DNA from: Amoeboaphelidium protococcarum X5
Taxonomy: Eukaryota > Fungi > Aphelidiomycota
Assembly (NCBI GenBank): GCA_023515725.1
Contig: JALDTO010000237.1
Coordinates: forward strand, 479,573 to 543,572
DNA length: 64,000 nt
Direction of reading: 5' to 3'
The notes beneath the pieces are model-generated. The model ran no database searches and was not told the DNA's origin. It saw only the letters and a program-made list of their open reading frames with translations. Of this stretch, positions 23,829 through 47,840 are shown one piece after another. How positions within the stretch are numbered: position 1 is the first letter of the stretch; each line of letters begins with the position of its first letter. A program made the translations under genes and the position numbers.

Positions 23829-24012
23829 TTTTAACAATAAGAGCATTTTACTATAACCGAGTTTTTTTCAAAAATATTAACAAAATTACATAATTAAGAC
23901 TTTATAGTTAAAAATAGGCATCACGTTCATCATTGTTCAAATTTACATTACTCAATATCACGTATTGTCCTTAGACCGCAAAAAACTTGCCCAAGTTGTA
24001 GTCGCGCTTACT

Positions 24013-24018
<6 letters not shown>

Positions 24019-24050
<32 letters not shown>
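24019..24050. repeat. (TC)n microsatellite
   Basis: Run of TC dinucleotides upstream of RPT6. Confidence 0.9.
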
Positions 24051-24051
<1 letters not shown>

Positions 24052-24137
24052 TGTTGCTGTTCTTCACTCGTAACGTTTTTTCCCATTTCAAATCCGTTCA
24101 TCTTTCTGCACTAAGCGAAACTTGTATATAACGAGCA

Positions 24138-25346: not shown

Positions 25347-25544
25347 GCAGTATTATGTGTACTTTAATTTACAGTTACTTACTGCTTAGATTTACTTTGA
25401 TTTTCTCTCTTATTGATGTTAATTGAGTGATTTATTTAGAGGGAGTTGTCGATGTTCCTCTAACGTCGTAATCAGTGATTGCTATAATCTTTTTTCTTTA
25501 TCGGGAAATTTATAATCACCACAAACTCGTTCAATTTATCATTA

Positions 25545-26303
25545 ATGGAATTCTAAATTATGCCTACGGATAGCGAGTAAGTTGTGTAGAGAGCGGTAGA
25601 ATTGGCAGAGGATATGGATCCTGAGCAATTGAAATAGTTTGTCACTTATATTCTGGAGAGACCAACGATGAGATCTCTTATGGCCTTGGTACGCGCTTTG
25701 CCTGAGAAATTTCTGGATTTCGCTGAAGAAGGTCCAGATCATGTTGGGGCAGCTTCTAATTAAGCTTCACATAGCAGATCTGAACTGTTTAGGACTCCTC
25801 AAAAAAACGCGTAGGGAATTTAATCTTAATCACGTCAACAAAGTTCTAGTAATAAACAGCGCGGACGGTCCTAGTCACCAAATACTCCGCCACCTGTTAC
25901 TGCTAATCCTCCGGCTAATGTACGCACGTCCGAATAATCGCGTCAGTAGGTCGGAGATAATGCTGCTGCATTTGAATCTGTGCCGCTGAATGAAATCTTT
26001 AATCAACCAGCCATTCTCAGTCCGACTAGATAATCAGCCCAGACTTAGCCACCTCCTGTTGGATCGCCAAGTCGTCACAATTTGCCTTGGGATGATGCTT
26101 AGCGTGATCGATTACTTGCACTTTTAGCTGAACAGAAGGGAATTACATACGTCGCATAATCTATGGGTCGCACTAACAGGGCTATTAACAAGCAATTGCA
26201 GTCGATTCTGGTGAATAAGTTTGGTTAGTTGTCGGATGCTGAAATTTGCAATACACTAAACATTAATCAAAACCTTCTGAATTATGTACGAAACGCAGAA
26301 TGA
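25545..26303 (+). CDS. Hypothetical protein with C-terminal Myb/HTH-like domains (paralog A, 252 aa)
   Basis: N-terminal ALVRALPE domain; C-terminal PWDDAQRDRLLALL...VAQSMGRTNRAINKQL followed by LSDAEICNTLNI. Confidence 0.75.
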
Positions 26304-26521
26304 ATGATATGTCTATTTTATATGGATGATATTACGTGGCAAGCGAAATAATTATGGTCATTTGGCAAAGGATCTTGACAGCGCAGAAGGATAAGAGAAT
26401 GTGTGTTGAATAAATAAAGATTGATTGATTTTTAGCTTGTGAAACCTTGACGATCTCTTCACTCTTTTTTTTAACCAAATATGTGATTTTTTGGAATATT
26501 TTGGTTATTACTGAATGCTGA

Positions 26522-27181
26522 ATGGCTCAATAAAATAGAGATTCTTTGGCGAGAGAGGCTGAGCTGTTAGCAGAAGAGACAAGTATCGATGATTTACAAG
26601 ACTTTGCTCGCTATCTGATGAACAAGCGCACCCTTAGGACTTACATAGCTTTGGTGAGAGCCCTGCCTGAGGATTTCATCGAATTCAGGGGTAACAGTAA
26701 TAGGCGCCCTAACAGTGGTGGAAGCACCAGTAGTAGGAATATCAATAGCGATGTGCAAGGATCCAATGACGGATTTAGTACGCCGGTGTCTGCAGCCCAA
26801 ACGCAATCATCTTCTACCCTTTAATCTCCGGCCGAGATTGCATCCGCGCAGTAGTTAAGAGATTACAACGCCGCTTAGAGCTAAAGCAGCAGCACCTCTC
26901 AGTAGCCTGCACAGCAGCGGTCATAGCGGCAATCTCCATCGCGTGCTAATAAATTCTGGACCAAAAACGATCTGATTACCATGAAAAATGAGCTTGCAAG
27001 TGGGAGATCTTTCGCTCAAGTTGCCAGCAGTTTGGAAAGAAGTCCATTCGCAGTCAAGTGCAAGTTAAAAGAGCAAGTCAATTCACTGGGTCATTTGAAT
27101 AATGCTGAAATTGCTCGAGCAATGCATATGTCAATTCGTTAAGTTGAAGAGGTTAAATACATGCGCCTTCGTAGAAATTGA
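26522..27181 (+). CDS. Hypothetical protein with C-terminal Myb/HTH-like domains (paralog B, 219 aa)
   Basis: N-terminal ALVRALPE domain; FWTKNDLITMKNELASGRSFAQVASSLERSPFAVKCKL followed by LNNAEIARAMHMS. Confidence 0.75.
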
Positions 27182-27488
27182 TCATTTGATTTTGGTGAAT
27201 ATAACTTTTTGATTAGGTGATTAGATAATTGCTTTCGATAATATTAAGAGCTTCATTATATCTTTACTTTTTTCTGTTCACTATCTCTGGATCTTTCAAG
27301 TCTATGTATTCAAGACGTGAAGCTATCCCAGTGTCAAGCATTGTTTGATCAGTTTCGAGCTCTCCTGTATCGATTGGACCGCTTTTGAGAATTCCCATTA
27401 GAAAAACTTACATTTGCTGTGCCAAACCTCTGAATTCCATCATCTACTTTCAGTCATTATAATCTCCTAAAAACAAAGTTTCTTCGAT

Positions 27489-28696
27489 ATGAATTTCATT
27501 AAAGTTAGGCGCTTACTGTCCGCTGCAAGGTAAAGCAATGTGGTTCGAATAGTGGAAGGTAAATTGCATATATTTAATCTAGTCATCTTTTAATCACTTA
27601 AACTTAATCTAATTTGTAGTCGGTCCTAGAGACGGTTTGTAGAATGAAAAACTAACGCTAAGCGCTGCGGAGAGAGTTCAGTTCATAAGAGATCTCTCAA
27701 AGGCTGGTCTGTCTAGAGTGGAAGCTGCTGCCTTTGTCTCTCCACAATGGGTACCATAAGTAAGACAATCCTGACTTTTATTATAGCGCGACAAGTCGCA
27801 ATGTCTTTATTACATTGATGAATATGTAGATGTCAGGCGCGGCTGAGATAATGACCCAGATTAGTTAGAATCAAGTTCCTGGATAGTATTTCCCTGCCCT
27901 GGTGCCTAACATTAAAGGCTTGCAAACATTTATCGAAGCAACTGACAATGCTGCGCAGCCTCTGTAACGTGAAATTGCTATATTCACAGCAGTGTCAGAC
28001 TCTTTTAATTTAAAGAATACTAATGTCAATGTTAAAGCGTCATTGAAGAAGTTTGAACAAGTTATCTCGATGGCTCAGGATAATGGTATTCGCGTTAGAG
28101 GCTATTTGAGTTGTGTATTGGGATGTCCATACGAGGGACTTAATGTGGATTTTACCAAAGTTCGTCAATTGTGTTCTTAATTGCTCGATATGGGCTGTTA
28201 TGAAGTCTCGCTGGGTGATACTATAGGTACGGGCACTGCTGTTAAAGTTGAGTAAATGATAGATTGTCTGCAATAACAATCATCCGCATCATCTTCTGAT
28301 TTATCCCGCATCGCTGTTCACTTTCACGATACATACGGTTAGGCTCTGGCTAATATTCATCAGTCTATTAGAATGGGAATACGTACGGTAGACTCTAGTG
28401 TAAACGGTCTTGGTGGGTGCCCATACGCTTAGGGAGCTAGTGGTAATGTTGCTACCGAGGATGTCCTGTATTTGCTGCGTGATTTGACCGAATCTGACAA
28501 TTTGATATTGGAGATTTTTGATGATTAGTAAGGTGAGATTGCGCACATTTAAGGCCGTGAAGCTATAGACACCATGTTGAGGGAGGTTGCTCTGGTTGGT
28601 AGTCAAATGTCGCGTCGACTTGATCGCCCCATTGGAAGTAAAGTTGCCGCTGCTGTACTGACCAAATCTAATGCTACTAAAAAGAGTAAACTATGA
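27489..28696 (+). CDS. HMGCL: Hydroxymethylglutaryl-CoA lyase; introns 27559-27619 and 27760-27829
   Basis: VRIVEVGPRDGLQNE, FVSPQWVPQM, EVSLGDTIG, AVHFHDTYGQALAN, GLGGCPYAQGASGNVATED; GT-AG introns. Confidence 0.95.
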
Positions 28697-28885
28697 TTAA
28701 TAAATTTAAAGTTGCTTTAGCCTCACACTTCACTCTGAGCTCCGTCCCTTGCTTAATCTTGTGTAACAGATCATCGAAATCATAATGTTACAGCAGCAAA
28801 CACGATTGTTTAGAATTGCTTGTTGTGCAACTAACTGTGACCTTCTTCATATTCCATTTCATCAAGAATATTATTAATATCAGAT

Positions 28886-29515
28886 ATGAATGACAAATTA
28901 AGTGACAAGCTTAGTGAGCAAAGTGAGGAAAATGAAAGACTCCTGTCAGTGATCGATGTGGGCAATGTGGTGCAGGGCTCTTACACAGCTCTTAATACAT
29001 GGCTGATTGATTTCAAAAAATTTATCGCTCGCAGCTCAACAGTCAATGTCGGATTGGGTATAATAGTGGGTGGGATATTTAGTGAACTGGTTTCAAGCTT
29101 CCTAAAGGACATCTTGATGCCCCCACTTGAATTGGGATTCGGCAACTCTCTCGTCAATCTATTCATCGTGTTGAAACCTGGCAAATCTAGGCGTGATTAC
29201 TACACCACTTTAGAAGAGGCTGTGGCGGATGGTGCAGTAACCGAGAATTATGGACAATTTCTGCAGATTCTCGTCTAGTTTCTAATCATTGTATTCATTC
29301 TTTACTGGCTGATAAAAGCATACACCGCATTTACTGAGAAATTCGAGCGAGAGCTGATGTAGATGAACATCAGCAGGGGTGAAAGTGTTAGCTAATCATC
29401 AGCAATATGTCCTCATTGTCTCGAGCAAGTCAAGCTGCTAGCATCTAGATGTCCGCATTGTACCTCCTAAATTAAGTAGTAACAAATAGCTTATGACTCC
29501 ACAGACAAGTCTTGA
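28886..29515 (+). CDS. mscL: Large-conductance mechanosensitive channel MscL (fungal type, with C-terminal CxxC...CxxC)
   Basis: DFKKFIARSSTVNVGLGIIVGGIFSELVSSFLKDILMPP, YTTLEEAVADGAVTENYGQFL, CPHC...ASRCPHCTS. Confidence 0.88.
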
Positions 29516-29744
29516 AATATAATATATCTGCCTCATCTGAATCCCGCGTTCCACAGTTTCACTTTCTTATTTGTTGTTTCAACTCCATTGTTCAAAGCGG
29601 GGGTTCTTTTAGTGTTATCTGATGATCTGAAACCGTGTTGACGCGTTTCAGTCACTCACTCATTCTCTTTATCACACATAAGTTGAAACAACTGTAAACA
29701 TACTTGTTATATCTCATATTCACTTAACTCTTTTACCTTATACT

Positions 29745-31615
29745 TAACAAATATCACAATCTCGTACTCTAGCTATGCTCTTTTGGTTAATGATAAAATA
29801 GTCTATTCTTGATTATGATTTAACACCATTTACAATGTAGACAGAGTGGGTAAAGCATCTCTTGTCTGGGTTAAGAAGTCTCCAGATATCAATCAGTCTA
29901 TGCTTGTACTGTTCATTAGTAATTTGACGCATTATTTTAACTTCGGCTTGGTAGAACTTTGGCGAGATCTGCTGTCTCCGACTATGAATCTGTAAATAGA
30001 TGGGTCGAGAGCACAGTCCCAGTCTCCACCAAAGACAGTATGTACTGAGTTATCGGATTGTGCTAGAACTTCTTCTATTTCACTTGCAAATTTTTCTAAT
30101 TCAGATTAGCTCTCCTTCTTGCCAGGAGAAGGTGGTAGGTAGAAGCATACTGTAAGCATGTCTTTGTCTTTACATCTAAGTTGTATACATGTAATTCTTC
30201 CTTCTAATTAAGAAACTTCCTAAATGCATCCTTACCAGCATTTGGCGAATATAATCGCCGTGCCTTTTCCATGTTTGTCATATTTATTGAAGCCATCGTT
30301 GTGATCAGTGATTATATCATAGTATTAATTTAGGATTCTATACTTCTTTATCCATTTACTAAACTCTTCAGCGGATGCTCAGGTCTCAGTCAACATGAGA
30401 AACTCAATTTACTTGGTGCTATCGAGGGCAGCTTCTTGAAGCATTCAGGATGGTAGATTTCTTTATAGTGCCGTCAGCTCTTCCGAAGAGACTCTACACT
30501 TTTTGATCAATGATGTGGATATGATTATAACTATATATATTAACTTTTGGAGGGTTTAATAAAGATCTAAAATTGATGTAGGCGTCATCCAGCTAAGATA
30601 TTCTATTTAAGTTTGGCTACTTCGAATCAAAATGAACCTCAGCTTCGTTGTCTGAGCGAGGGGTGGAAGCGCGAAAATCAGACAGAGATTTGAGATCACT
30701 GATTGAAATTTGTTATTTGTTAATATCATTTTCCCTTCCGTCGTTGGAGTTATTAGCTGGAAATCCTACTTTCATACTCATCTTGCTCTTCTTTAAGCTT
30801 CTGGGTGGATACGATACAGAGCTGGTGACTTATGTTCACTGTGAGGGAAGACAAATCCTTTCGATGCAAAAAAGTCTTAAACCTGTTTCATGCTTTCCGC
30901 ATTGCCAAAATCAAATTAGACCTCAATTGCATTATCTGTCAGTTGCCAGTATTCATAGTACTTAATCTAAATTTAGTTGGCTTTGAAAAAATGATTGATG
31001 CGTTACGTGTGAAGAACTCTGGTAGCCTTGTGTATGATGGTGCCTGCTAGACGAAGTTGTACGCTGGGTAATTGTCATCCTGGATGAATATTTTACCATT
31101 ATAATCTCCAACTCTGGCATTAGCGCTTTTACATTAATTCCCTAGATCTCTTCTGCTACATAGACCGTTATGCGTCTTACAGAATATTCATTGGATTCTC
31201 CCATGATCGTATGTGTAGCACCAGAGTTACGCGTATTCCATTTGTTATGTTTGGATGGGGGTCTCTATGTAGAGTTTTTATCTTAGCTATAGCCAGGTCG
31301 AAAGTGATGTCATCCGGCGCCCAAACCCAGTATCTATGATGCAGATGCATTGGATTATATCTAGGAGCCTAAGATTCTTAGAAGTCGGTTGTTAGAGCTG
31401 CAGTCTCTTGTTCATGTTTCGGCAGCCATTGTGACTCTAGATTAATGCGTAGTTTGATACTCCTCTAATTCTTGGCTATTATACATCGTCTTGTCCTCAA
31501 AGCGCTAAAAAAGCCACTTGGATCACCTGCCTACTATTACGAATTCGTTTAATCCATCATCATTTCTACTTGCTCTTCTAGTTCTTTGTATACATCTTCA
31601 AGTTCTTAGGAATAA
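29745..31615 (-). mobile_element. Degenerate non-LTR retrotransposon (L1-like) fragment: APE endonuclease plus upstream remnant, no RT seen
   Basis: APE motifs MLTET, GKGTAII, GRI, YLPP, GGDWD, LIDIWRLLNP...FTH, SRIDYF at about 29780-30410, with TGA stops and frameshifts. Confidence 0.8.
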
Positions 31616-31619
31616 GATC

Positions 31620-32259
31620 GCAGACATGTGCCTTCTTCAAGTAAACAGCCATATCAAGCATCGGAACGGCATCATCGGAAAACATGGCGACAAGATAATG
31701 CTAAAGAATGACCGGTGCGTGTATATAACATAAACCGCTTAGCTGAACGCGTTCCACGTAGGCATGGGGCTTGTCCTTGAGTAACTTATGATCGCGGAAA
31801 ATTACATAACTATTTTCGGGACCCCATTCCGGATGCTTGCCAACAAAAGCATCAAACAAAGTCCCCTCATCGTCGAAGTTCTTGCCGACCTTTCCTATAA
31901 CAACAATCCTTCTAAGTCGCTCACGGGCCTATTTCAATTTATTGCGCGCCTCATCAGATACCATTGCACGATCAGGATTGAGAAGATTGTCAAATTTCTT
32001 CGTTCGTACCACACTTTCCTCGTCTCGAATAATACCCTTTGCATACAGGAAAAAAACGCAAAACATCTTTCATCTCTTCTTCTGTTAGCCCGTCCGCCTT
32101 AATCAGAGCCATGGCAGAATTTGCGTCGTCGTCCGATAATTTCCAAGAATTTCGACGCTTCTCAATAACGGCTACCTCCGTAGTCACAGCTGCACTGATC
32201 TTAGCTGCTTTCGTGGACGATGGCGAATCAGACAATATCTTTCGTTTTCTGCTCGACAT
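31620..32259 (-). pseudogene. Truncated, frameshifted papain-like cysteine peptidase gene
   Basis: Reconstructed LRFFLYAKGII...HPEW...FRDHKLLKDKPHAYVERVQLSGLCYIHAPVILQHYLV (QxxGxCY catalytic Cys motif); about 3 single-base frameshifts; 3' half replaced by the LINE relic. Confidence 0.6.
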
Positions 32260-32531
32260 TTACAAGAGATGAAGAAATGAAAGTAAATGAAATCTATAAT
32301 CACGTGTTTTGTTAGTCGTGTAAGAGAATAACCGGCAAGATCACGTGTTTACTTTAATATCTGCCTGTAAACAATATGCAGTAGGCAAAGGAAATCAGGT
32401 GAATCGAAATGAGGCAAGGAAGACGTCTGCTTGTTACACAATTGAAAACAATTCGGAGTCATCGTGACTTAGAAAGAACAATAAGAATACGTGCGGTCCG
32501 AGGCCACAAATTGAGTAAATATATTGATTTT

Positions 32532-33035
32532 TCAAATTGATTAAAAAACGAGATCGACTTAGTTCTTGATCTCTTGATTTTTCTCCACCGTCAAAACAGC
32601 CTTCTCGATGTCGAGGTCTTCCGAGTCAGTGTGTAAAGGATTGATACCACCGCAAGTGACCTTGAAGATTGTAATTGACACTAAAAAAGCCATCCCGATC
32701 AACATGAACAGAACATATGGACTCCCAAAGCTTAAGAGAGTAGCCCAAGCGCATAGTGCATGGCCGGCTCCAAGTACAAACACGTTCGAAGGGAAAAAAT
32801 AGAACCAGTCCAGTAAACAAGGGATCAGCGAACAAATTGACACAAACACGGAAAGTACTGCTAGGATGGCGTACAAGACAATAACCGGCAGGATCACGGG
32901 CAATCCAATATATAGCAACGCAAAGCTTAATATAAGAACGAGAGGTGTTGAGAAAATTCCATAGATCCATCCAAGCCCATATGCGGCCAGTGAAAAGACA
33001 CCATTTAAATCAGGAGTATTTTGGATCGAGTACAT
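32532..33035 (-). CDS. Hypothetical multi-pass membrane protein (start uncertain)
   Basis: Open frame with 4-5 hydrophobic segments ending at TGA 32532. Confidence 0.5.
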
Positions 33036-34205
33036 CAGATAAAAGCTTTTGACCAAAAATACTGCGCTGTTTACCTTACTTACTTTTCAATATTGTAAAT
33101 AAAATGAATGGATGTTGTTCTTCTAGAGTACTCTTAGGAATGTGGAGGTGAAATCCCCTTTTCAATAAGTTGTGGGGTAAATTGCGCCAATATCACGCGT
33201 TTACTTAAGTTTTTTGCCACTTTTTGGATAAGTTATTGCCCTAATGTTATGGCGCAAAATCCACGCTCTTTGTATATGTTATACAGATTTGAGACCTCTA
33301 TCGAAAGGTACTTATTTAATATATGTCTCATAAGTATTTTTTGAGTTATTCTTGAATTTATTAAAATATTTAAATTAACTTTTTTTGTAGTGAGTTATTC
33401 TAGCACTTAGAATAGCACTAACAAAAACTGGCAAATCAAAAATAGGGAATCAATTAAAATGGTGTCAAAAATCAATTTAAAAGCTTCAGACGATTTCCCA
33501 GTGTAGAATATATTTACATGACCAATTTTTATTCAGTTTTATCATTAATTTGATAGTGTTTCAACACGAAATAGTTAATCACCATGCCAAAATTTTCATC
33601 AAAGTATTGTTGTGAAAATTAGCGCAAAACATAGCGACTGATTGGAACGAGCGCGCACGGAAATGCGCTCATTAATCAAATACATTATAATACGTATCGT
33701 ATTGGATGTGACTTGAGGAAAAGGGATATTGCACATACTGCGCAAGAATATAGACGCGTATATACATCCTTCTTCATGAGATTGTTTTACCGGGCTTTCG
33801 TTACAGTCCACTTGGTGTATTCTAAAGCAATCGGCCAATGCAATTTGCACACTGGTGACACAATTTTATCAACTGAGAACGCCAGTTTATTGTTAGACAA
33901 ATTTAACCAGTAAGAAAATCAGAGTAACGTATCTTTGTGCTAACTACACTCAATGTGAGTAGATTATATTCTGTTGGGACGCGTGTCAGTATTGTTGCAA
34001 GTCTTGATGATTGGATCATTGTTTACACATCATTTACTGAGTCTTGGAAGCTATTAATAATACGCGTCCATAATGAACAATAATAAACTCTTCTCTGTAG
34101 TGAAATAAATTTTCGTACTCTTGAGACGGTACCGTGCCGAACAATGAGCAATATCAATACATAACAACGTCTGCCGCGCTCCACGAGTTTCATTGCTATT
34201 GCTGA

Positions 34206-34784
34206 TTGGTGCTGGGTGATTAGGAGGCGAACTACACCTACTGTCCCTTTTGTGACAGCAACGCGCGTTATGAAAAGTCCCTCTATTACAGTGGGCATCT
34301 GGTTGTCGAGTGTCCTGTCGCTATGGACATGCCCGCTGATATGTTAAGGTAGTTCGTCTAGTACCTTTTGAAGAGGTAGGTTGGTCCGGCCAACCACGTC
34401 CTCCTTGTGGCAGCGTACTGTCATGTCCAAAAGAAGTACATGCTGTACACCAATGACATTAGTGCGCCTCCGCTCCTTCTCTCCCGCGAGTAGCTGCTGG
34501 AGTGTCCTCCTGCTGTGGTAAAGGCTCTGACGCGATTATATCAAAAGTCTTATACATTGGAAGAGATGTGTCGTTCTGCGCTGGAGTAGAACTACCAACT
34601 CCATGCACGTATCCACGGCAAGCAATCAGATACGTGCTTTCTCTGCGAGCAGAAGCCTGCACCAGCCGCTAACTGCACTCTTGGAATGTCTTCTTTGCCT
34701 CTGCCCAGACTGATGGTGCCTCCCGCCCTCCTTCTTATATCACAATACCGACGCTTCCAAAGACACTTAATACTGTTTTTATGA
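34206..34784 (+). pseudogene. Degenerate Cys/His-containing frame, possibly a non-LTR retrotransposon C-terminal zinc-finger relic
   Basis: YCPFCD...GHLVVECP and LHARIHGKQSDTCFLC resemble zf-RVT; no in-frame start upstream of the first motif. Confidence 0.3.
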
Positions 34785-35047
34785 AAATCTATCTCAAATC
34801 GCCACTCTCTTAAAATATAGATCATAGTAGCGCAGAGGGGTGAAATATTAATTTCAGCTCTGCAACTTCCAATGGGGATCGCATTGTTTCAAATTTGTCG
34901 CGTATGCCAAAGGATATGCCCCAACCTTATTTTATGAAGTGGCACGCGGAGCTACAAACTTCAAACTAGAAAGATGAATAGTATTTAGCACAAATTTAAG
35001 CGTTAGAGAAGATAAATGTAATTTCACTGGCTAAAAATGTGCTTTAT

Positions 35048-36316
35048 TCAACGAGGCCTTTTATCAAGATCAATCAATAGCTGTTCCAAATCACGGACTT
35101 CGTCTTCCGGCATAATACGAACACGCGAATACATAGGTGCTATATTAATAAATCCTGATAAGAATTTAGGCTAAATTAACTAGAGCTTTTAAGAACGAGC
35201 TACTTTCTGATCGTCTTCGCCATCCCTCTTTCTCTTATTGCCTATTTGCTTACCAGTAGAGATCCCAGTGGATTGAAACTCATACGACTTTAACGGCGTC
35301 TTCGTCTATGAGAGGTCATCTTCCAATGATACGTCGCGATCATCATCACCGCAAGCTAGCAAACAAATAGATATTACAGATAATATCACACCCGTCATCT
35401 GCTCAATGCAGTAAGAACGAGCCACCATTTCCTTAGAGTAAGGTTCTCTGTCGTCGGCAGAGTCGCTGCTCCCAAACGGCCAGGTGTGTATAGCTTCACG
35501 GGCATCATTTTCCACGAATACTTTAAAAGCTTGCTAAGAATAGAGAATAGTTGGGCATCCTGCCCGATACATCGTCGAAATCATCTGGATGCCACGTGAG
35601 CCATGATGCCATGGTTTATCTGTAGGAAATGCCGATGCTTTCTTACATTCAGTTGCCAACAAAGCATTTCCAGACCAACCTCTGAACAAAGTGTCAGATC
35701 TGCCGCGAATATCGTAATGTGGTCGAGACAAGATACCACCAATGACAAATGATTAATTGTGGAAACCCCTGACTGTAATATCAAGACATGAACCAACTTA
35801 CACCACAAGAGCATCAAACGAATCTTATATTATACTTTCGCTTCCGGACAAATTTAAACTAACGAATTCGCGATAAAGTCGTTAAATTTTAGAATTATTC
35901 ATTACTTTCTAATTTACAATATCAAGCCAATTTGATGGTGCACCAACGATAGCGGCCAATGCGCCAAGAGAGTCTATAGGCTGCAGGCTTCTGTAAATAA
36001 AAGGATTTAAAACCAGGTGCATCATTGCGGAGGCAGTAGGCTTTTTTACAATCTAAATATCACCAAGCGAAGCATTAGGTGACTCAACGAACTGCCACAC
36101 ACCAGCTTCTTCATCAAGATACACGCGATTAGCTTGCAGCTTCGCACTCATTAACTAGTTTAAATTTTGCTCCACATTGATTTCCTCCGGTAATTCGAGT
36201 GACTCTACAGAGACCTAGGATTCAACATCGCTTTCACTAAAGTAGCTATCAATATCAGAGTTGACTCGGATGTTTATGATCTCTTATTCACTTTTAAACT
36301 TAGGACCATGAAGCAT
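35048..36316 (-). CDS. Putative PD-(D/E)xK restriction-endonuclease-fold protein (422 aa)
   Basis: Intact table-6 ORF; SESIIQ...IRGRSDTLF...LLATECKK...SRGIQ; basic KRKR near the C-terminus. Confidence 0.65.
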
Positions 36317-37298
36317 CTTGTTAGTGTATATACAGAGGTTATAAAATCTGTGAAAAAGAAATGAAATGTGCAAGTACAGTGGAATCTTAGTTTCAATCTC
36401 ATTGGTAGAATTGGAAGGGACGGTCCTTTAAAGCCCCTCGTTTTTACACTGAAATTCAGTTCATGTGAATCGTTCTGTTTCAAGATTGAGTTACAAATAA
36501 TCGATGGTTTCATAGTAGCATCAATATATATTGTTATGCCGACTTTTTGTGCTATTTATGAAAGCATCCTGTAGTATTATCTCTTTAGAAACAACTAATT
36601 ACTATGTCAGATACAGGTATACGTTGAGAATTTATTTCACCGTAAGGTACATGTAAATTCAGTTTTCTAGTTAAGTTCAATCCTTCTCAAAAATGTTGTA
36701 CGCGAAATTGTAATTCAACTTCCGTCTACGAGCCTCACGACGCTCAAAATCCGAGAAATGATGCTTATTCCTTTCAGGCGCACGTAATATAACCACGAAT
36801 GTTCTGGGACATCTTCGGTTGGCGTCCTGTCCGCCAAGGAAGATTTAAGACCCGGTTACCTGCAAATCAGCAAGAGCTTGCATTGTTATGTCACGGAGTT
36901 ATTCGATGGAGAATTAACTTTGGTTGCAGTTGAGTTGACCTGGCGCAGTGGACTTTTTGCATGAAATACTTGATGTCTATGTGCATATCTTGCTGAAATA
37001 CTATCGCGCTGTAATTAATGTTTGGTCGCTATATCAATAAGTATTTCGTTTGCTAGTCATTGTTATTGCATCATACTGTGATTATCTTTGCGTCTGGGTA
37101 AGTTGGGTAAATTGGCACACGTGTTAAGTACTGCTACGGAGGCGCTCATTGGTGCTGCAGATGATGAAGGGCTTATGCAATGAATTTAAGCAAGGTGTCA
37201 TGCTAAATTGGTCAAGGTTAAGGTGATGGTGTCCAGTGCAATGCCAGGTTGAGTTTTTGGGCTTTGTTACGTTGTTGGGACAATTCGAAGATTACAGT

Positions 37299-37383
37299 TG
37301 CTACTACGGGGATATGTGGGTACCCCGATGAAAAGATCGTCGGAGCTTTTTTGAAAGTGTACGAGTGATCGCTGAACCCGCAT
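37299..37383 (+). ncRNA. Orphan Fanzor omegaRNA scaffold / transposon right end (copy 2)
   Basis: 71/85 identical by hand alignment to the reverse complement of 40416-40499; compensatory pair changes; ends in CCCGCAT. Confidence 0.7.
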
Positions 37384-37658
37384 GAGCGTGAGCTGAAAGA
37401 GATGAACATTAGCAAGGGTGAAAGTGTCAGCTACTCATCAGCTGTATGTCCCCATTGTCTCGAGCAAGTCAAACTTCTAGCATCTAGATGTCCTCATTGC
37501 ACCTCTTAGATTAAGTAGTGAAAAATAGCTTTTGACTCCACTGATCAGTCTTGAAATAGAGCAGTTTCCGTCTCTTCTGATTTCGCGTTTCACAATTTCT
37601 GATTCTTCTTTGTTGTTTCAACTCCATTGTTCTGAGCGGGGGTTCTTTTAGTGTTATC
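37384..37658 (+). pseudogene. mscL: 5'-truncated mscL paralog (3' coding part plus flank), homologous to 29345-29619
   Basis: Colinear 275-bp match with mostly synonymous differences; encodes ERELKEMNISKGESVS...CPHC...RCPHCTSQIKQ*. Confidence 0.85.
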
Positions 37659-37696
37659 AACACACTCAAATAACACTAAATATCACAGTAAAAGGC

Positions 37697-38905
37697 ATGG
37701 ATTATTTTGTGTATGAATAGATTGAATAAATTTAGGAGAAGCGATAGTATAGATCCAGGCGAAGAGGTCATACTGCTCCGTTGAAGTTGTCTGATGAGGC
37801 TGCCGGGGCGCTCCGTAAAGGCAGTCAATTGATATCAAATGTATTTCACGCAGTCAAGTAAGGCAGTATTGTCGGAGCTTTAGATGCAGTTACTGATACT
37901 TACAGTGCAGACGATTAAAAATCTGCTGGATATATCTGGAGGCACCAAGAGTCAAAGTCTAATGAAGGATTTTTTAGTCAATTAAAGTCGTTATGGACTG
38001 GACCTGTCAAGAAGGAAGTAAAAGAGGACACTGGCATGAATGCTGCTGATGTAGGAAGAAGTCTGGCGCTAGTTTAGTAACAAGTAGAAAAGGATTAATT
38101 GCGATCAAGTCAAGTGAATTTACTATCACGCTGCTGGGATGAAGACGAGTAATCCACAACGCTCTTAAATGAGCAAGCTCACGAGGAATCCCAGGCGGCA
38201 GCAGATGATTCTGTAAACCAACTGATCGAATAGCTGGATTAGACGTCTCACAGCTTAAAAAAGTCTGAGAAGAGACAGGATCTAGTCAAGTAGAATCACA
38301 GCGATAATCAATTCTCTTTAATGGCGATGTTAGTACGCAGGAATACATTCAACAATTAGAGCTCATCCAGATCGCGGGCTCTATAAATTTATAGCAAGAT
38401 TGAAGACTTGAAAAAGGTAAGCCGCAACGTAGTGTATAAGGCTGAGATTATATGAATTGTGTAGGATCTCCTTGAATATGCTGGGACTTTAAACTCTGAA
38501 TCCTTGGATGATGATATAATACTTGCGCCAAAAGTGGAGCCACGAATACCGCCGCCACCTCCACCTCCAAACTTTGCGTCATTATCACTCAATAAACTGA
38601 GTAGTTCAGAGAAAGTAAAAATGACTGAAGTTGGACGCGGTTAATAATCATCATCAAATGCTGATTTACAGACCTCTATTAGCAACAGATTAAAGTCTTC
38701 GGAGCCGTACTTGAGAAAGACCAACATTTAAAGAAGCCCAGGAGGTAAGGAATTTATTAAAATGACATATTATAATTGATATTGTCTCATAGTAAAAAGT
38801 AATGTAGGCACTCCAATAAGAAAGCCGTCTGATGGTTATTAAGGCCCTGGAAAAGATTTGATACTTGGATTATAGCGAAAATTCAAGTCTATTTGCATCG
38901 ATTGA
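37697..38905 (+). CDS. MTFR1/PRR11-like proline-rich protein (2 introns)
   Basis: PPPPPPP, then LRKTNIQRSPG/GTP across an intron, and GLQRKFKS; GTAAG...TAG introns near 38417-38464 and 38745-38808. Confidence 0.6.
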
Positions 38906-38980
38906 CAAATGATGATATATCTTTAAAGATTTAAGTCAAAATACATTAAATGGCTATATTCTATACAAATTCATTTATCA

Positions 38981-39373
38981 TCATGCGTTTTAGTCTGCGT
39001 GACTCTCGCTCAACTGTTGATACTAAACCGGTCGTTACTAACGCCGCAGCACCGCAATGGTCACTATCGCAGCTACGGCAACCATCACGCTTAAGCCTGA
39101 AGCAATGGCAGCAATACTCACATTCGACTACTATTTCTAAGCCGCGGCATCCAACAATTCCTGCTGAGCCTACCAACTCTCCTAATCATAATCTGTTTCA
39201 ATATTGGCCGTCTTGTCCGGCATACTTGGCGGTGTATCAGTGACTGCCATGCAGCCATTGTCCATGTCCATATCCATGTCAGTGGACATAGTGTTGTTTT
39301 AAGCATATGTCAAAGGGGCATATGGCAATAATGCCATGATAATGAACTATACGAATGTGATGCTTAAGCGCAT
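38981..39373 (-). CDS. Small type-I membrane protein (130 aa)
   Basis: Signal peptide MRLSITFVQFIIMALLPYAPLTYA; TM segment IAAIASGLSVMVAVAAIVTIAVL followed by RR; YQQL motif in the tail. Confidence 0.7.
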
Positions 39374-39724
39374 TTTTAACTGCAATCAATTGTGGTTGCA
39401 ACGTTGACAACGAAGAAACTGATTGTCAAATCTTTAGTATCAGTTGAAGAGCAATCACTAGTGCAATGTCTAATTTTAGCTCGCGTTGATGTTCCGACAC
39501 TACAGGTTAATTTGTGTTAACAGCCTAAACCTGATGAATCGAGTCTAGACACGCATGAGTTAAATGTAAATTGCATTGCCGTGTGTACCACATTATCGCC
39601 GCTACCCTTTAACTTTGGAAAGATCACTCACTATCAAAGTCATTGAAAATCTAAATTAAAAGATCGCACTATGATCAAATAGTTCATATACCATTAATTC
39701 AATACTCAAGTATTGGTAAGACGC

Positions 39725-40126
39725 TCAACTCTTCTACTCATCCAACGATGGCATTTTCAAAATCTTGCGACCTTCATTCTTAAAGTGTTTCGTCATCATT
39801 TTCAAAATCTCATTATCGCGCAAATGCTCAGGCACCTCCTTCTATCCAGCAGTCCAGTAATACAGGTCCCAGTCATTTTCATCAAGTAATCGGTCGTACT
39901 ACTGTAACTACTGATGAGATAGAGAGTGCAAATGCTTTTAGGCAAACGTAGAGCAAAGCAGATCACTCTCCAGAATCCCCCTCTTTCTTGATTAATACAG
40001 CAAACGGGCACGCATTGTGTCAATACTCTCACCATCCCTAGCTATTCTAAGTGGTGGAAGAGGACCACTTTAAACTGACATAAATCGGGACTATCGCGTT
40101 ATTAGATACACACCTTTCCTAATCAT
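39725..40126 (-). CDS. SDH5: Succinate dehydrogenase assembly factor 2
   Basis: [24 protein letters not shown]...YDRLLDENDWDLYYW. Confidence 0.93.
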
Positions 40127-40415
40127 CTTAAATGCTTGAATACTATCGGCAGTGATCTCATCATTAACGAAAGAAGAAAAATACGTCATTCAAACATTTC
40201 GCGACTGATGATCTTCGCAAAAGTCTTTGATTCAAATAGAATGGATCTTCTTCATAAAATGATCATATCTTAAAAATGAACGTTTGATATCATTGTTTTC
40301 TACCACTGATTTAAGACACGAATTGAAAATTGTTTGATATTAGAAGCGTTCGAATCTGTTTTATTAAACGCTAAAAGTTCAACATTGACTTTAATTAGAG
40401 GATACAGAAGCCGCC

Positions 40416-40603
40416 ATGTGGGTTAATCGATCATTGGTACACTTTAAAAAAGCTCCAGCAATCTTTTCATTGGGGTCCCCACATAGCCCCTTAATAGCAG
40501 AGTAACAGTATAGTACGAGCATAACGATAAGCAATTACAAAACACTTCTATGATTTAGTGATCAGATGTTGAGCAAGGCGCAATATAGTCTCTTGCAAGA
40601 CCT
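40416..40603 (-). ncRNA. Putative Fanzor omegaRNA (conserved core 40416-40499; 5' limit unknown; guide would start at 40415)
   Basis: Directly 3' of the Fanzor stop; hairpin GGGGC-UAUGUGGG-GACCCC whose loop is complementary to the terminal CCCACAU; homologous copy at 37299-37383. Confidence 0.7.
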
Positions 40604-42835
40604 TCATATGGACATCACGAACTCCTTATATAGTGTCTAATCCGCTTAGTTCGCAGTAACCAATTTCACTTCTTCCTTAGAAAAACTTCGAGACATAACA
40701 TTATATGATCCAACATTATCCCGATATGCACGAAAATCACCCAACATGAAGTACTCATCAGCACCAAGACAGTTATGTAGCACATTCTGAAACGGATGTT
40801 GTTTCGACGTAAACTCCTCCGTTGTCACGAGCACTTACTTTCCAGATCTAAATATATTAGCTTATGCCATTGCAATAAGTTTCATACGACACTTGTAATG
40901 GCCAAACGCCAATAGAGTCTTCCGCGTATTTTTATGGAGAATATGCCCAGAATTTTATTAACCACGCGAGTGTGTTACCAGTACATCGGCCGTATCACTT
41001 AGAACGGGAGGTAGATTCAAACGCTTTCTCCGTTTCTTCACCATCTTAATAGTCAGAAACTCGGGAAGAATGATTAGATCATAATGCCGCATCAAAAAGT
41101 TGCCAATTCGGTTATGCAAATTCGATACATATGCAGAGAATTTGGTGTAAGCACGACTAATGCCAATATCAGTGGGAACAACATTATTCTTTGATTACTT
41201 CCATGTGTGCCATAATTCTTTCTTCTACGCTTTAAACTCCTCCAGACTCAATTGTCCATTCTGTAAAGCAGCTGCGCGATTATCCATCTAATCTTTCAGA
41301 GACTATGCATTGGAAATCTATTCACTCTTATTCTTATAAAGCTACTTGAAATCAGGCGCAATCGCAATGAATGACCTGCGATCCAAATCGAAGACGGTCA
41401 TGCTCACTCTAACACCTGGATCCACCGAGCAAGTGTTTCCAGTTTAACGGCAACGCGCATCACGGCGGCTTATAAATGATCTAGCACCTTCAAGATTCTC
41501 ATCTGCATTATTCATATCTTGCAGTTGCTAGTAATACCAATCAGTGAATGGACCTTATATACAGGAGGCATCATACGAAACAATCTCAAAGAACTTTTTT
41601 CTTCTTTTCACGAGCTTGAACTCTCTTCCTCTGCCATAGCCAAACTTGATGAAACGGGGCCAGTAGTCATTCTTGCCAGGCTCTTAGAATAGAGGATCTT
41701 TGGCATACAGTTTCCCAAAGCTCTTGAGGAATGAAGGCAGTAGGCGGACGCGATTGCTATCTGGATCTACACGGGCATCTTACGCTTGAAACTGGAGCAT
41801 CTAAAACTAATCATCATCTCTATTTGGCATAAAGTTGTAGTCTTTGATATCACCCTTTGTATACTTCTCATGAGCCGCATAGTAATACGTGCGAGTCGCA
41901 TTAATAATCTCATCTTGCACTGTAGATGGCATTCGCATCCAACGCAATCTTGGGTCGTCATCAGGCACGCGGCACTTTTTGGCTTTGACTTAACTTAGCG
42001 CAACATGGTTCCTTAGCGCTTGTATTGACACCTTTTCTCCTTAATCTCTGGAATCATTCAAAATGTTAATGATGAAATTGACCATTTGAAACTTGAGATC
42101 CAGCCATTCATTGAATTTGTGTATGAACTTCTTATCAGGGAATATACGAATATTAATCGAGCGTATCTGATCATACTGATTCAGTTCGGCAATCTCTCGC
42201 CGATTTTTCATCTTGCCGATTTTTGGTTTCATGTTTTCCAACGCCACTAGAGATTATCCCGAAAGCTGTAGCACTTTCTTCTTCTTCTTCTTCTTCAAAC
42301 TCTTAGATGACGACTATTACTGCTTAGATTTCCATTTAGCCATTAGAGAGTCTGTATCTGATGCAATCTACTGATTCCGCATTTTGGATTCAATGATATT
42401 CTCAATTTAATGCTGCACCTGACTAAAACTTTACTTCTCCTGGCTCTCACTTACGTTTTGTCCCATGTCTTTACGATTCAAATTAGGATTGAACTTTGCT
42501 GTTAAGGAGTGTTCTGTTTATTAAGATTACGGTATTTGCCAGTCCTTGTCAGTGCATTTTAACAACAGTCGTTAATTGAACGCGTCTGTGTTGCCATTCC
42601 AAACATAATGTCCAAACCATTCAGATTTAGTATTATACCAAGGGGCAAATACTGGAGCAAATGCGGCAAATGATGATGCGCCAAGTTCTTTGACTATCCG
42701 AATATCTACTTCATTGATCACCTTAGCACACACGGAGAGAAATCCGGGAATATCTTGATGATATGCTTAAGTTTTGAAATCTTCTAGTGCTGTCTTTGCA
42801 GCCGCAGATAATTCACGTTTTTGGCTTGGCTACAT
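40604..42835 (-). CDS. Fanzor2 / IS607-type TnpB-derived RNA-guided endonuclease (743 aa)
   Basis: IRIFPD N-terminal motif; RuvC-I SVDPGVRVSMTVFD; NLHNRIGNFLMRHYDLIILPEF; TRKTLLAFGHYK; rearranged RuvC-II TTEEFTSK; RuvC-III RDNVGSYNV; open frame with about 30 in-frame TAA/TAG. Confidence 0.88.
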
Positions 42836-43553
42836 TTTCAAATGATCAGTATTGCGATGAAAGAATTAGAACACTGTCAGTAAGCATTGAATACAATGCA
42901 ATGATGAGATGTGACACGACCAGTCATCATTTCATTGTGATATCAATGAGGATGGTCGCAGCTTTAAACCACTCAGGAGTTATTGGTATTGTTAAGGTAT
43001 TGAGACAAGCTCAGAAGATTGGCAATAAAGTAAACGAGTAATTAGATTATTGACTTGTATTGAAGAGTATGTAAAAATATATAGAATCTCATTGATAATC
43101 GTATTTAAAATAAGACTAACTATCATACAAATACTTTATGGATAAAAAATTTCAAAAGGACTTGGTGCACGAATGATTGATCCGCCCAAGTTCGGCAATC
43201 TGAAAATGGGAAATCCCGACGCTCATTTTGAAGTGTTCCGCAGTCACACGCGGGCGTGCAAAGCCTGTCTGGCAGTCCTCTGCTTAGATCTTGTAAGCAT
43301 AACTAATTATTCGAACGCTTTTCAATAGGCATGCTTTCAATCTAATCTGTCAGCCTTCGAAAACGCTCTTAATATTCTTGATAACTAAATTCATCACATG
43401 GCGCTGCTGTCCCTTGGTTTCTTGTTTGTTGTCGACGGAATGTTTTGAATTTCGCGAAACACTCAAAATCATTATTGTTTCACCTGAAACACTGTCTGTC
43501 CTGTCCGTTGTATATAATCGATAACACCCCCTTGATCGATATCTGCACTGGAG

Positions 43554-46475
43554 ATGGGGTTCAATTGGACTTATGCTGGCTTTGTGATCGCTATAGCTAT
43601 TGTCTTGCAGGTCTTTGTCTTTGAGAAGAGTGACTGGTTCACTGACTCTCCGCTGTTGTAAAGAAAGCGCCGTTCCCCAATTCCGACTTATAAACCGCTG
43701 ACTAATGGTACACTGGAAAAACGTACTTACTACTACGGCTGCAGACCTCCTTCATACAGACCTCCATCCTACAGACCTCCTCCTCCGCCCCCTCCTAGGC
43801 CGCCACCTCCTTCTCCTTAGCCTCCTTCTCCTTAGCCACCTGCCCCTTAACCACCTACTCCTTCTACCTAATGTGATCGCTAGACGATTTTTGCTTATGG
43901 GGATACCTCTTTTATTCAGCTGAGATTGACCAACAGTCTATGGGGCTGGTAGAGAAGTAGTTTGAGGTGCAGTGAAAACTGGGTCTCCAGTGCTCTGTAT
44001 ATGAACGCTGTCAACAACATCTTTAGCAGCGGTAGAGTTGTTGGTAATTTACAAGTCAAGTTCTCTTGCTCTGGTACTATTACCGCCCGTTACGTTGGCT
44101 TGAAGTAGTGTAAGAAGACGTTCCGCTCAGTCAATTTCCATGTTGGTTATTCCAGCTGCCCCTCTGTTAATCCGAGCCTATTTACCTGCAGTCCTAATGG
44201 CAGATCTAATGATCCAGCTTGTAGAAAAGACTGTGATAGTGGTCAATGCGATGGTAAGGATATTACGTTGACGTTCACTGGTTGGGATAGCAGGCGCACT
44301 GTATACTTTGTTGCTCACGCTGTATCCAATTCAGATCTGTGCGCTTCTGATGATTGTGGAAGTACTCCGCCATAAACTGTTACCGTCACATCGACTTTGA
44401 CCAAAACTATGGTGAGTACAGTTTTTAATACGATTATTAGGACTAGTACCATCTAGCTGCCCCCTGTCACAATAACGAGGGCCACGACTGTTACTCATAT
44501 AGTTTCCACGACTTTGACAATTCGTCCTCCGCCCGTGACGTCACATATCACAAGAAGTGTGTCGTATCCCGTTACTACCACTGTAACTCTGCCACCAAGA
44601 ACTGTCACAAGTCTGATCACGTTGCCGCCGGTTACTACTACTTATACTGTAACAGTTGAAAGACCTCCAGTAACCACCACTTGGACGCTTACCAACACTT
44701 AGTATGTCACTAGTACTAATACTGAAACTACCACTACATATCTGCCTGCATCTACCTTCACCATAACTGAGACTTCCATTCTGCCTGGTACCGTAACCAC
44801 TATAACTATCACTGAAGATGGTCAAGTGATTACTAGCTACATTACAAGCACTGGAACTATTACTATAACTGGTACTTAGACAGTAACTACAACTAATATT
44901 TAGTACATTACTTTGGATCCTGTCACTGTTACTGTTAATTAGCCTGCTACCACCATTACTACTGCGTTGACTATTACTTAGACGTCTTTGGTGACTGTGA
45001 CTGAAACTTCTCCTGTGTACTCTACTTTCTCTACTACCATTTTTAGTACGACAACGTCTACTGTGCTGGTGCCAACCACTATCATTACGTTTATACCTGG
45101 TGAGACTGCTCTGACCACTGTAACCTCTTTTATGACTTAGACAGTGATGTAGACACTGTACAGCTACATTACTACTACAGAGAGGATCACCGAAACTGTT
45201 ACTGTTAGTGGAGGTGGTGGTGGTCCGCCAGTGACTTCTTACATTACGATTACTTAAGCCCCTGTTACTGTTACTGAGACTCAGTCAATTACTCTGCCTC
45301 AGGTTACTGTGACCGTTACTGTTGCTCCGACTACTATTATCCAAACGTCTACTGTGTTTTAGACACAAACTTATACCATGACGTAGACTATCACTGAATC
45401 TGGTACCACCATTACCACTACTATCTTCAGTACAAGCACTGTATCTGTTCTGGCAACCTCAACATCTACTATCCCATCCACTACTACCACCTATACCCCT
45501 CTGCCTACTCCTACTTGTATCGATGTTGGTGGAGCATATCCTTTTAATGCGTTCTTTAGTGGTTCCTATTCTGCTAGCTCTGATGTTCAGGGAAGACTGG
45601 CTGTTGGTGGTGATGCAGCTTTTGCTGGCGGCTTCTCTATCGCGGATCAGCTTTATGGCATCGATTAATGTAAGTCAGCTACATTAGTCATTGGCGGTAA
45701 ATTGGTAAATTGGTTGACTGGTCGTAACTATTATGGTAATATTGTTGTTGGTGATGACTCTACTGCGAAGCCTTCTGTACCCAATAACAATATCGGTTAT
45801 GTTTTGGAGCCAGATTGTTCTATAAAGAAAATTCCTAATTTTATCAATTTCGATACCATTAGTCAGAAGTTGACTTAATTGTCCCAGAAGATGGCATCTT
45901 GGGTTCCTACTGCTCTGAGTGTTAATGTCAAGTATGGTTTGATGACCATCTAGGTTGGTGGTCTGAATCGCTATGAAATTATCAATATTTAGAACGGATC
46001 CATGTTTACCTAAAGAATGATCAACGACTTTGCGATTGAAGGTGCTACCAACAATACCATCCTCGTGTTTAACATCTTCGGGTCCTCTGGTGGATTCGTC
46101 GATATGAACATGGATGCGATGATTGACATTCCTACTATCTTCAATTTTCCTAATGCTACTTCTCTGGATATCAATGGAGTAGCTGTTCGTGGCATGGTTT
46201 TGGCACCATTCGCTAATGTTAATGCTGGACCTGGTGTTGTTTGGGGCCCAGTGTATGCTGAAAGTGCTGCCGGACCTTTACAGATCAATCTGGTTCCAGA
46301 ATTTCCATTGTGCTCTAATCCTGATTCTATTTATGGCCTATAAACCCCAGCGATGTCATAGACGACAGATAGCAGCAGTGGATCTCTGCCAATGAGAATC
46401 AATTTTAATTTTGGATTTGAATTGATTGTCGCTTTGACTATGCTGCTCTTTGGAGTATTCTACTTAACGATGTGA
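43554..46475 (+). CDS. Cell-surface adhesin-like protein: Pro-rich segment, Cys-containing domain, Thr-rich stalk, choice-of-anchor A domain, hydrophobic C-terminus (973 aa; copy 1)
   Basis: FNAFFSG...SDVQGRLAVGGDA...IFNFPNAT...GMVLAPFANV...GPLQIN matches the choice-of-anchor A / ice-binding-like fold; hydrophobic N- and C-termini. Confidence 0.85.
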
Positions 46476-47840
46476 GAGTGTCGTATGTATAATGTATGAT
46501 TATTTGGATTAAAAATAAACTATTGATTGATTACTGATTCAATCATAATTCTTCACTCAATAGACTGGATTACACAAAAGTTTGAGGTTAGCAATTTAAA
46601 GCTAAAATCACTGATTTTGACACCGCTTCCATTCATGTCATCATCGTATTGAGGATGATGTAATAGTGAAACCCGAGATTTCAATTCAAAAGACTTTGAA
46701 CACAAATAAATTTTCGGGCAAAATTAGACTGTAGTTTGAAGATTACTGTAATTAATCGGCACTGAATAATGTTTATCTACACGTCATCTGATGTCCTAGT
46801 TCGTTTTAACAAACAGACGCGTTAGTAAGAAGCCTAACCGTTTGAATATGCCATGCCAATCTTTTGAATAATCGAGTTTACACAATAAGGCAACTTATCG
46901 TGACAGATAATCAGCGATATATTTATAGAACAATCAAAGCCCACTGTGGCTCATCATTGTCAAAGTAGCACTCCTCGCGGTTCAACGCAGACCGATTGTC
47001 AGTCTGCTCATGACCGCTGGTCCAATTTGTTCAAAATCAAAGATCGCGGACAAACTGGTCCAGGAGGAACTTTAATTTAGCAATACAATCTTAGAGTTAA
47101 ACACGTACATATAAAACTATGAAATATAGTCAAATAATTGTTGCAATAAAAGGCCATCGAAAATAGCGTAAGATTGAACAAGAACTCCGTCAAATTATGA
47201 TTGAAACGGGCTTTTTCAACTAGAAAAATGAGAGCAAACAGCAGAATTGTTTTAGCTTCACTCTGAGTTGGCGGTGAACTAGCCTCTCATCGAAAATTTT
47301 TATGGTTTATTTTTGGGAAGATAGGATGCTAATATCATGATAGAAATTTTGTATTAGAATGTTACTACGCCCTGTTATTACTTCCTCGCTTAAAAATGAA
47401 TGCTGCACCGCGACAAATCTTTCTTGCATGATTAGATAAAATCCATATTTAGGGAATCCCAAATTCCTTTATGAATGTGTAACAGACATGGAAATCTACA
47501 TTTCGGTAGCCACCTGTATTCAAATGAAAAAAGGAGCCCATATCTTCCCTAACACTGAATGCAGACCAGGAGGCGCTCAGCAAAGCACGGAAAGATACGC
47601 AGTCTGGCCAGCTGCTCAGTGCAGCGAGGTGAAACGTTGGTTTGTTCGCAGCCACGCGCGCGTTTGTTTCAGCTTCTGGCAATCGCCGCTCGGCCCAGCA
47701 TTAAATTCGCCGGCTGCTTCGTCACCAATTTGTTTCCGCAAAGTCTCCAACTCATTGTTGTTGTTTCACCAGATTCATACTTTAAACCGTCCCCTTGTAT
47801 AACAGTTTAAGCTCCGTTGTGAGATACCTGTATACTAATC

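Follow-up and report, generated by a model that had tools for sequence, protein, structure and literature searches.

Next to a truncated copy of mscL in Amoeboaphelidium protococcarum lies the RNA-like right end of a Fanzor-type element that has lost its nuclease gene, and the intact mscL gene is found 8 kb upstream. This arrangement raises the question of whether the orphan RNA is directed against a gene of its own genome, or whether the resemblance between its guide and mscL is the trace of an old insertion. The window, meaning the whole stretch of 64,000 nucleotides that was analysed, is part of contig C235 of the 23.6-Mb assembly, and it was compared with the homeologous contig C192 and with the rest of the genome. 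The features discussed below are listed in Table 1.

Table 1. Features around the junction between the orphan element and the mscL fragment (positions within the window)
Feature	Position	Strand	Description
Intact mscL	28886..29515	+	209 codons in a code with TAA/TAG=Gln; TGA stop; C-terminal CxxC..CxxC tail
TAM-like motif in intact mscL	29337..29345	+	Directly 5' of the position matching the element junction
Homology copy 1	29345..29619	+	Last ~43 codons of mscL plus 3' flank
Near-cognate target in intact mscL	29346..29365	+	16/20 match to the fragment-side guide
Solo LTR-like repeat	29620..29757	+	~135-bp TG..CA terminal direct repeat; starts exactly where the 275-bp homology ends
Old-family element, 3' 512 bp	36873..37384	+	5'-truncated, decayed, ORF-less, Fanzor2-derived; full unit ~1.17 kb
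Conserved omegaRNA-like core	37299..37384	+	GGGG/CCCC hairpin with loop pairing to the last 9 nt of the element (pseudoknot); two further small hairpins
Homology copy 2	37384..37658	+	5'-less mscL fragment: tail codons, TGA stop, 3' flank
Flank-derived guide position	37385..37404	+	First 20 nt past the element end
Young Fanzor2 element, 2772 bp	40415..43186	-	ORF 40607-42835; core 40415-40499; 3 kb from the orphan

The element families and the RNA core at their right end

The orphan belongs to an old repeat family. At eight other loci, the alignment covers exactly 36873-37385 with 84-94% identity, and a 191-nt probe was found at 17 places in the genome, which sets the size of the family at 15-17 copies at least. 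The length of the full unit and the 5' truncation of the window copy follow from these other copies, which reach about 660 bp further 5', as far as a left end that they have in common. No trace of this left end survives in the window copy. The family has no long open frame and has kept a fossil RuvC-III motif of a Fanzor2 protein; in the orphan copy about 25 fossil codons around this motif are all that remains, and the nuclease gene is absent. A reading of the 512-bp repeat as a solo LTR was rejected since full copies measure 1.17 kb and carry Fanzor2-type ends. Elsewhere in the genome, at C207:35749-35815 and 43309-43430, an insertion of about 7.5 kb appears to have divided another copy of the old family in two.

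Of the 36 copies readable in the old and young families, 35 end in CATG and one in CATT, and in all 36 the flanks diverge from the next base onwards. The position of the guide is thus DNA just outside the right end, and because the CATG end is sharp in this way, the scaffold ends at 37384. The G at this position is shared by the element terminus and the mscL homology, in which it is aligned with 29345. An orphan omegaRNA-type end directly adjoining mscL-derived DNA, as stated in the original prediction, was borne out, with homology over 37384-37658. The scaffold end given there was also correct, but the 20-mer proposed as the guide starts one base inside the element.

The young element contains one large ORF of 743 codons with 33 in-frame TAA/TAG codons and no other ORF of size; a serine recombinase TnpA was not found within its 2772 bp. 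Elsewhere in the genome there are 22 near-full-length copies of it, of which 21 have 97-99% identity and one has 93%. Its place near the orphan is recent and coincidental, because the element is missing from C192, where the site is empty.

As TAA and TAG occur in frame, the whole young ORF was assessed through its database homologs. A 78-aa piece covering RuvC-II found 30 proteins in a library of 1.8 billion proteins. Ten longer homologs were scanned for domains: eight contain a Cas12f1-like TNB domain (PF07282), five of these also OrfB_IS605 (PF01385), and two distant homologs alone (P0004 and P0014) have MerR and resolvase N-terminal domains. Over its full length, the window ORF shares 48% identity with P0003, which in turn is 96% identical to a second paralog in the genome with an open frame of 756 codons (C179:334124-336337). 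A profile built from P0003 and its homologs matches PDB chain 9b0l_P with an E-value of 1.4e-32 and, more weakly, Cas12f and ISDra2 TnpB; 9B0L is the structure of a mimivirus Fanzor2 (PMC11832414). The young ORF has the DPG signature in RuvC-I that separates Fanzors from TnpB (PMC10711439), and it lacks the zinc-ribbon cysteines. Direct searches gave no match, neither with Pfam on the stop-free pieces of the ORF, nor with phmmer against the PDB for two ORF pieces, nor at this locus in the genome-wide search with PF01385 and NCBIfam NF040570. By this transitive evidence, the assignment of the element to the Fanzor2 type holds.

The paralog on C179 is apparently a single-copy Fanzor2, 48% identical to the protein of the young family, and has its own version of the core. 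A further TnpB/Fanzor family, separate from these and with its zinc ribbon and RuvC motifs intact, was also observed (C264:680500-685500, C155:1148300-1152900 and about 22 other places); its open frames of 976 and 1113 codons match the C-terminus of NF040570, and neither BLAST nor phmmer detected similarity between this family and the window ORF. No literature linking Fanzor with Amoeboaphelidium was found.

Old and young families share both ends, namely 86 nt on the right with 84-88% identity (40415-40499 on the reverse strand in the young element) and 48 nt on the left with 77%. The right end is the core of a predicted structured RNA, which is common to three diverged lineages: the old family, the young family and the C179 paralog. 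Within the old family it is the best-conserved part, with a mean pairwise identity of 96.7% compared to 77-93% elsewhere. RNAalifold applied to 19 copies predicted two hairpins as well as a terminal stem between the last 8 nt and a segment further inside, and one compensatory pair, G-C to A-U, separates the old family from the young one. When the GGGG/CCCC hairpin was added as a pseudoknot, 97.9% of the cells were paired, compared to 23-63% when the partners were slid against each other. In the C179 paralog, the core follows about 80 nt after the stop codon, and its terminal stem of 9 bp keeps 9 of 9 pairs by way of three compensatory (double) changes; these pairs were counted by script as the C179 sequence has a wrongly placed gap at its 3' end in the MAFFT alignment. 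The window core is 97.7% identical to that of its homeolog, and the sole change in the terminal stem results in a G-U wobble. The folding energy of the core taken alone was not significant (z of -1.2 and -0.1), and a scan of the window with Rfam gathering cutoffs gave no match.

In ApmFz2 and TnpB, too, the core of the scaffold is a pseudoknot, in which the very last scaffold nucleotides pair with a segment further upstream (PMC11832414). The architecture is of the same kind, although the conserved core here is much more compact, with about 86 nt compared to the 205-nt scaffold of ApmFz2. Conservation, covariation and position within the element support 37299-37384 as the putative conserved 3' RNA core of a gene-less Fanzor2-type element.

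The mscL gene, its partial duplicate and the insertion site

Pfam MscL (PF01741) matches the stop-free piece 28886-29275 of the intact gene with an E-value of 2.5e-13. The MscL domain search of the assembly found two such loci, one per homeolog, and no third. In the public protein set, the product of mscL on C192 is listed as a hypothetical protein of Amoeboaphelidium protococcarum. The C-terminal zinc-ribbon tail is native to mscL, since the distant MscL protein P0033 has a tail of the same kind.

Gene and fragment are related at a constant offset of 8039, with 87% identity between 29345-29519 and 37384-37558 and 89% between 29545-29619 and 37584-37658. Genome-wide, the 275-bp segment occurs four times only, as two mscL 3' ends and two 5'-less fragments, with one pair on each of the homeologous contigs. 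The fragment begins downstream of the channel domain and therefore covers the zinc-ribbon tail and the 3' flank; the MscL domain (PF01741) and the transmembrane helices are absent. A 5' remnant of mscL between 29620 and 37384 was looked for and not found, and neither was a continuation of the homology past 37658. The resemblance is evidently homology by descent and not a chance match, and for this reason chance statistics are inapplicable to the match between guide and gene.

The LTR-like repeat at the end of the homology on the gene side has at least 20 genomic copies with 84-90% identity, including several direct pairs 4.84-4.85 kb apart. A remnant of it at the right border of the fragment was searched for, and the result was a 10-nt match at the level of shuffled sequence. 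Gene and fragment are separated by a patchwork of repeats in which the homeologs differ by an indel of 2.3 kb. The stretch concerned, 30178-32483, is absent from C192 and includes a 710-bp unit with copies of 90-91% identity on C98 and C135. A copy of another repeat family occupies 34952-36807 (90% identity to C98:1543131-1544984 and 93-97% to copies on C106 and C177). It contains an open frame of 470 codons on the reverse strand (35051-36460), and about 65 bp separate the end of this copy from the point at which the old Fanzor element is truncated.

Site preference can be derived from the genomic copies of the element. The left flanks of 21 independent young-family insertions share a motif of four to five A, two A/T, G/T and G (A-rich-W-W-K-G), and the left flanks of the old family fit the same motif once their first two bases are counted as flank. 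In most copies the left flank ends in K-G, although this is not always TG. In a weight matrix built from the 21 young-family flanks, the true sites score between 1.9 and 9.4 bits. The mscL site of the window, ending at 29344 or 29345, scores 5.6 bits, which lies inside the range of true sites and in the top 0.4% of all window positions. The corresponding site in mscL on C192 is in the top 1.2-1.8% and reads T-T-T-G at the junction, an exact fit to the model. The suggestion that the intact gene approximates the empty site and that the bases upstream are a TAM candidate is supported by this motif, as an insertion consensus obtained from the genomic copies, one of the checks proposed with it, recurs at the mscL site.

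The empty site of the young element on C192 has a single TG, while at the filled site each junction has its own TG and a longer duplication is absent. As IS607 crosses over at a matching dinucleotide (PMC10711439), this one filled/empty pair fits an IS607-like dinucleotide crossover without target duplication beyond the shared TG.

The substitution pattern between the copies had been taken as a sign that the fragment was once a gene under selection. The differences between the fragment and mscL of the window are indeed biased towards synonymous changes, with 11.5 synonymous and 5.5 non-synonymous differences and a pN/pS of 0.14 over 43 codons, and the swap between TAA and TAG is present as well. 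The same synonymous bias is seen between the orthologous mscL genes of the two contigs (pN/pS of 0.17). The comparison of the two fragments with each other, which is the sole branch that surely postdates the truncation, gave a pN/pS of 0.84 from four changes. In addition, mscL of C192 is 89-91% identical to both fragments and 81% to its ortholog in the window. Its TGA stop is common to both fragments, whereas mscL of the window has TAA (Gln in this code) at that codon and reads on for 12 codons (29472-29515). Since the C192 gene is closer to both fragments than to its ortholog and shares their stop, much of the divergence either lies on the branch of the functional window gene or has been redistributed by gene conversion. 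Either unequal rates or conversion events are thus part of the history of gene and fragment. Selection on the fragment itself is not compelled, because divergence on the functional branch together with gene conversion explains the bias equally well and no 5' remnant of mscL is present. In both homeologs, the fragment has an open frame of 39 codons (37402-37521) that begins at an in-frame ATG, covers the zinc-ribbon tail and closes with TGA.

Age of the junction, its origin and the fate of the guide

C235 and C192 are collinear homeologs over 23850-30177 (87.6% identity), 32484-40416 (91.8%) and 43182-46795 (88.5%). Both carry an intact mscL and the junction between orphan and fragment, and this junction is 95-97% identical between them. 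It therefore predates the divergence of C235 and C192 and is not a chimera of the assembly, the outcome that had been named as speaking against the original prediction. A hybrid genome with homeologous contigs and a repetitive element is a setting in which haplotypes or repeats could be joined by mistake. Nevertheless, the chance that the junction is such an artefact is negligible, as it is found again on the second contig at 92-97% identity, with flanks that are collinear over 8 kb and with private substitutions of its own.

Taken together, the locus is probably a fossil Fanzor2 insertion junction and not a working system. An early member of the Fanzor2/IS607-like lineage would have integrated at a preferred site consisting of an A-rich stretch followed by T-T-(T/C)-G, with the crossover at or next to the TG. 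This site would have been part of the 3' coding region in an additional copy of mscL sequence, at a time before the two homeologous subgenomes split. Since the scaffold ends at the right end of the element and transcription would enter the flank, the flank would have become the guide by construction, in this case an mscL-derived one. Rearrangements in this transposon-rich stretch may later have removed the 5' 660 bp of the element and everything upstream, so that the 3' 512 bp of the element and 275 bp of mscL tail and flank would be the remnant. The similarity between the guide and the intact gene 8 kb upstream is due to descent and is probably eroding neutrally. This order of events is a reconstruction, and so is the idea that the extra mscL copy once exceeded 275 bp. 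Insertion into a complete gene was deduced and not seen, because neither the 5' half of the paralog nor the left end of the element has left a trace. An open frame in the fragments of both homeologs, albeit with a length of only 45 codons, is unexpected for a long-dead pseudogene and counts against a fossil. Also to be set against it are the good preservation of the window core and the closer similarity of mscL on C192 to both fragments than to its ortholog.

The duplicate could also have arisen without any independent mscL paralog. The old element might have sat in the real mscL gene, and its 3' part might have been copied 6-8 kb away together with 275 bp of downstream mscL, by read-through of the right end (3' transduction), by filler-DNA repair or by reverse transcription of a read-through guide-precursor transcript, with the donor insertion later being lost by seamless excision or selection. 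Several observations would be expected from such a transfer: the duplicate comprises 275 bp of mscL only and its start coincides exactly with the element junction, the genome has no more than two MscL domains, the copy is 5'-truncated like retro-copies and products of abortive repair, and transcripts of such elements normally cross the right end into the flank (PMC10711439). However, the right limit of the homology is the edge of the LTR-like solo repeat on the mscL side, a right-end-like or poly(A)-like feature is lacking on the fragment side, and an insertion into a single gene that appears to be essential would have to be followed by its clean loss. This origin is therefore considered rather unlikely, and insertion into a duplicated mscL copy with subsequent loss of upstream sequence is favoured over a co-duplication of element end and mscL flank. 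Of the proposal that a Fanzor element had inserted into a paralog or homeolog of mscL and destroyed it, the insertion junction and the TAM-like site remain, while a full paralog is not demonstrable and destruction of the homeolog is refuted, as the comparison of the homeologous loci found an intact mscL next to a fragment in both.

Whether the guide could still act on mscL depends on how well it matches. The predicted 16/20 match was confirmed in either register, and counted from 37385 the mismatches are at positions 5, 13, 14 and 15. Against mscL of C192, the window guide matches at 14/20 positions. The guide on C192 differs from that of the window at positions 2 and 7 (2/20), and its match to its own mscL is 12/20 and spans a target from which 9 nt have been deleted. 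Between fragment and gene, identity over the first 20 nt is 80% compared to 82-87% for the whole fragment, so the guide is no better conserved, and between the homeologs it is diverging at least as fast as its surroundings. For efficient cleavage, TnpB needs a heteroduplex of 12-16 bp (PMC12803034). The TAM-proximal 7-8 bp or so form a seed-like intermediate, and binding tolerates mismatches only beyond about position 8; in Ymu1 TnpB, mismatches at positions 1-4, the only ones tested directly, abolish unwinding (PMC12803034). We read the guide as a match by descent that is probably decaying neutrally, and the orphan RNA would no longer be in use. Self-targeting or regulation of mscL, which had been put forward as a possibility, is not supported in view of the mismatch at position 5, the 2/20 difference between the homeologs and the 12/20 match in cis on C192.

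A living RNA would have to be loaded in trans on a Fanzor2 protein, either from the young family or from the C179 paralog, and to bind or cut the intact mscL beside the TAM-like motif. It might then act as a regulator by binding without cleavage, similar to TldR, or introduce breaks that would promote gene conversion between the copies. The genome does hold intact Fanzor2 genes, the RNA core is intact in both homeologs, the target has its TAM-like motif, guide positions 6-12 are matched, and mscL of C192 has signs of conversion with the fragment; TnpB is also able to bind targets with TAM-distal mismatches without cutting them (PMC12803034). Against this, the mismatch at guide position 5 falls within the seed-like TAM-proximal stretch of about 7-8 bp (PMC12803034), the guide is conserved neither between the homeologs nor towards mscL on C192, and the young element nearby is absent from that contig. 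Furthermore, only one intact Fanzor2 is multi-copy; its core and that of the orphan differ at 14 of 86 positions, and upstream of the core the two are unrelated in sequence. We consider an active RNA very improbable. A similarly slim chance is given to the more general idea that the ~1.17-kb ORF-less family is a eukaryotic counterpart of the bacterial omegaRNA-only elements, with its RNAs loaded in trans by intact Fanzor2 proteins and with the RNA of 37299-37404 giving a binding-competent, cleavage-poor complex on mscL, be it the organism's own gene or that of a mating partner. If this were true, such a complex could modulate mscL or promote conversion between the mscL tail and the fragment.

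Relation to known systems and significance

The locus adds a member to a known kind of system. As in the OMEGA systems of the Fanzor2/IS607 type (mimivirus ApmFz2, PDB 9B0L; ISXfa1 TnpB), there is a TnpB-superfamily nuclease with the DPG signature in RuvC-I, carried here by the young element, and a structured 3' RNA whose last nucleotides take part in a pseudoknot. The guide likewise comes from the right flank and the motif from the left flank, and the elements form multi-copy families. Integration, judged from one filled/empty pair, may also take place at a short dinucleotide common to both partners with no true duplication of the target. In contrast, the left-flank motif here is A-rich and followed by TTG, whereas that of ApmFz2 and ISXfa1 is GGG. 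The protein also differs by its missing zinc-ribbon cysteines, the 2772-bp element by its missing serine recombinase, and the orphan copy by the absence of any nuclease gene.

The bacterial PATE-type elements are reportedly ORF-less derivatives of IS200/IS605 that keep their ends and the omegaRNA, as Meers et al. are said to have described in 2023. The old family resembles them in being a short, non-autonomous family of about 1.17 kb in which both ends are kept and the RNA-coding right end is strongly conserved, with proteins supplied in trans, an activity that is putative here. It is unlike them in its eukaryotic host, in its Fanzor2/IS607-like lineage and in its decayed nuclease gene with a still visible RuvC-III fossil.

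TldR proteins are nuclease-dead, TnpB-derived, RNA-guided repressors (PMC10705468), and the idea of a transposon-derived guide that binds beside a TAM and regulates a host gene is common to both cases. However, the guides of TldR are conserved and match their targets, whereas the guide at this locus is decaying and mismatched; the site is in a 3' coding region and not in a promoter, and the Fanzor2 proteins of this genome keep their catalytic residues. With self-targeting CRISPR spacers, the locus shares a guide similar to a gene on a chromosome of its own genome. Unlike an acquired spacer, this resemblance appears to be a by-product of insertion beside a duplicated gene fragment, and it is imperfect in the seed. 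Since an insertion beside duplicated host DNA can yield such a guide, a match between guide and gene alone should not be read as regulation.

The locus is a natural read-out of the site choice and the scaffold end of an aphelid Fanzor2. The left-flank motif of 21 insertions, one empty site in the homeolog, the sharp right end and the compact core backed by covariation provide parameters for in vitro tests of the enzyme. Beyond these useful parameters for end, motif and RNA core, a gene-less family with a strongly conserved RNA end is of interest for the study of non-autonomous OMEGA elements in eukaryotes.
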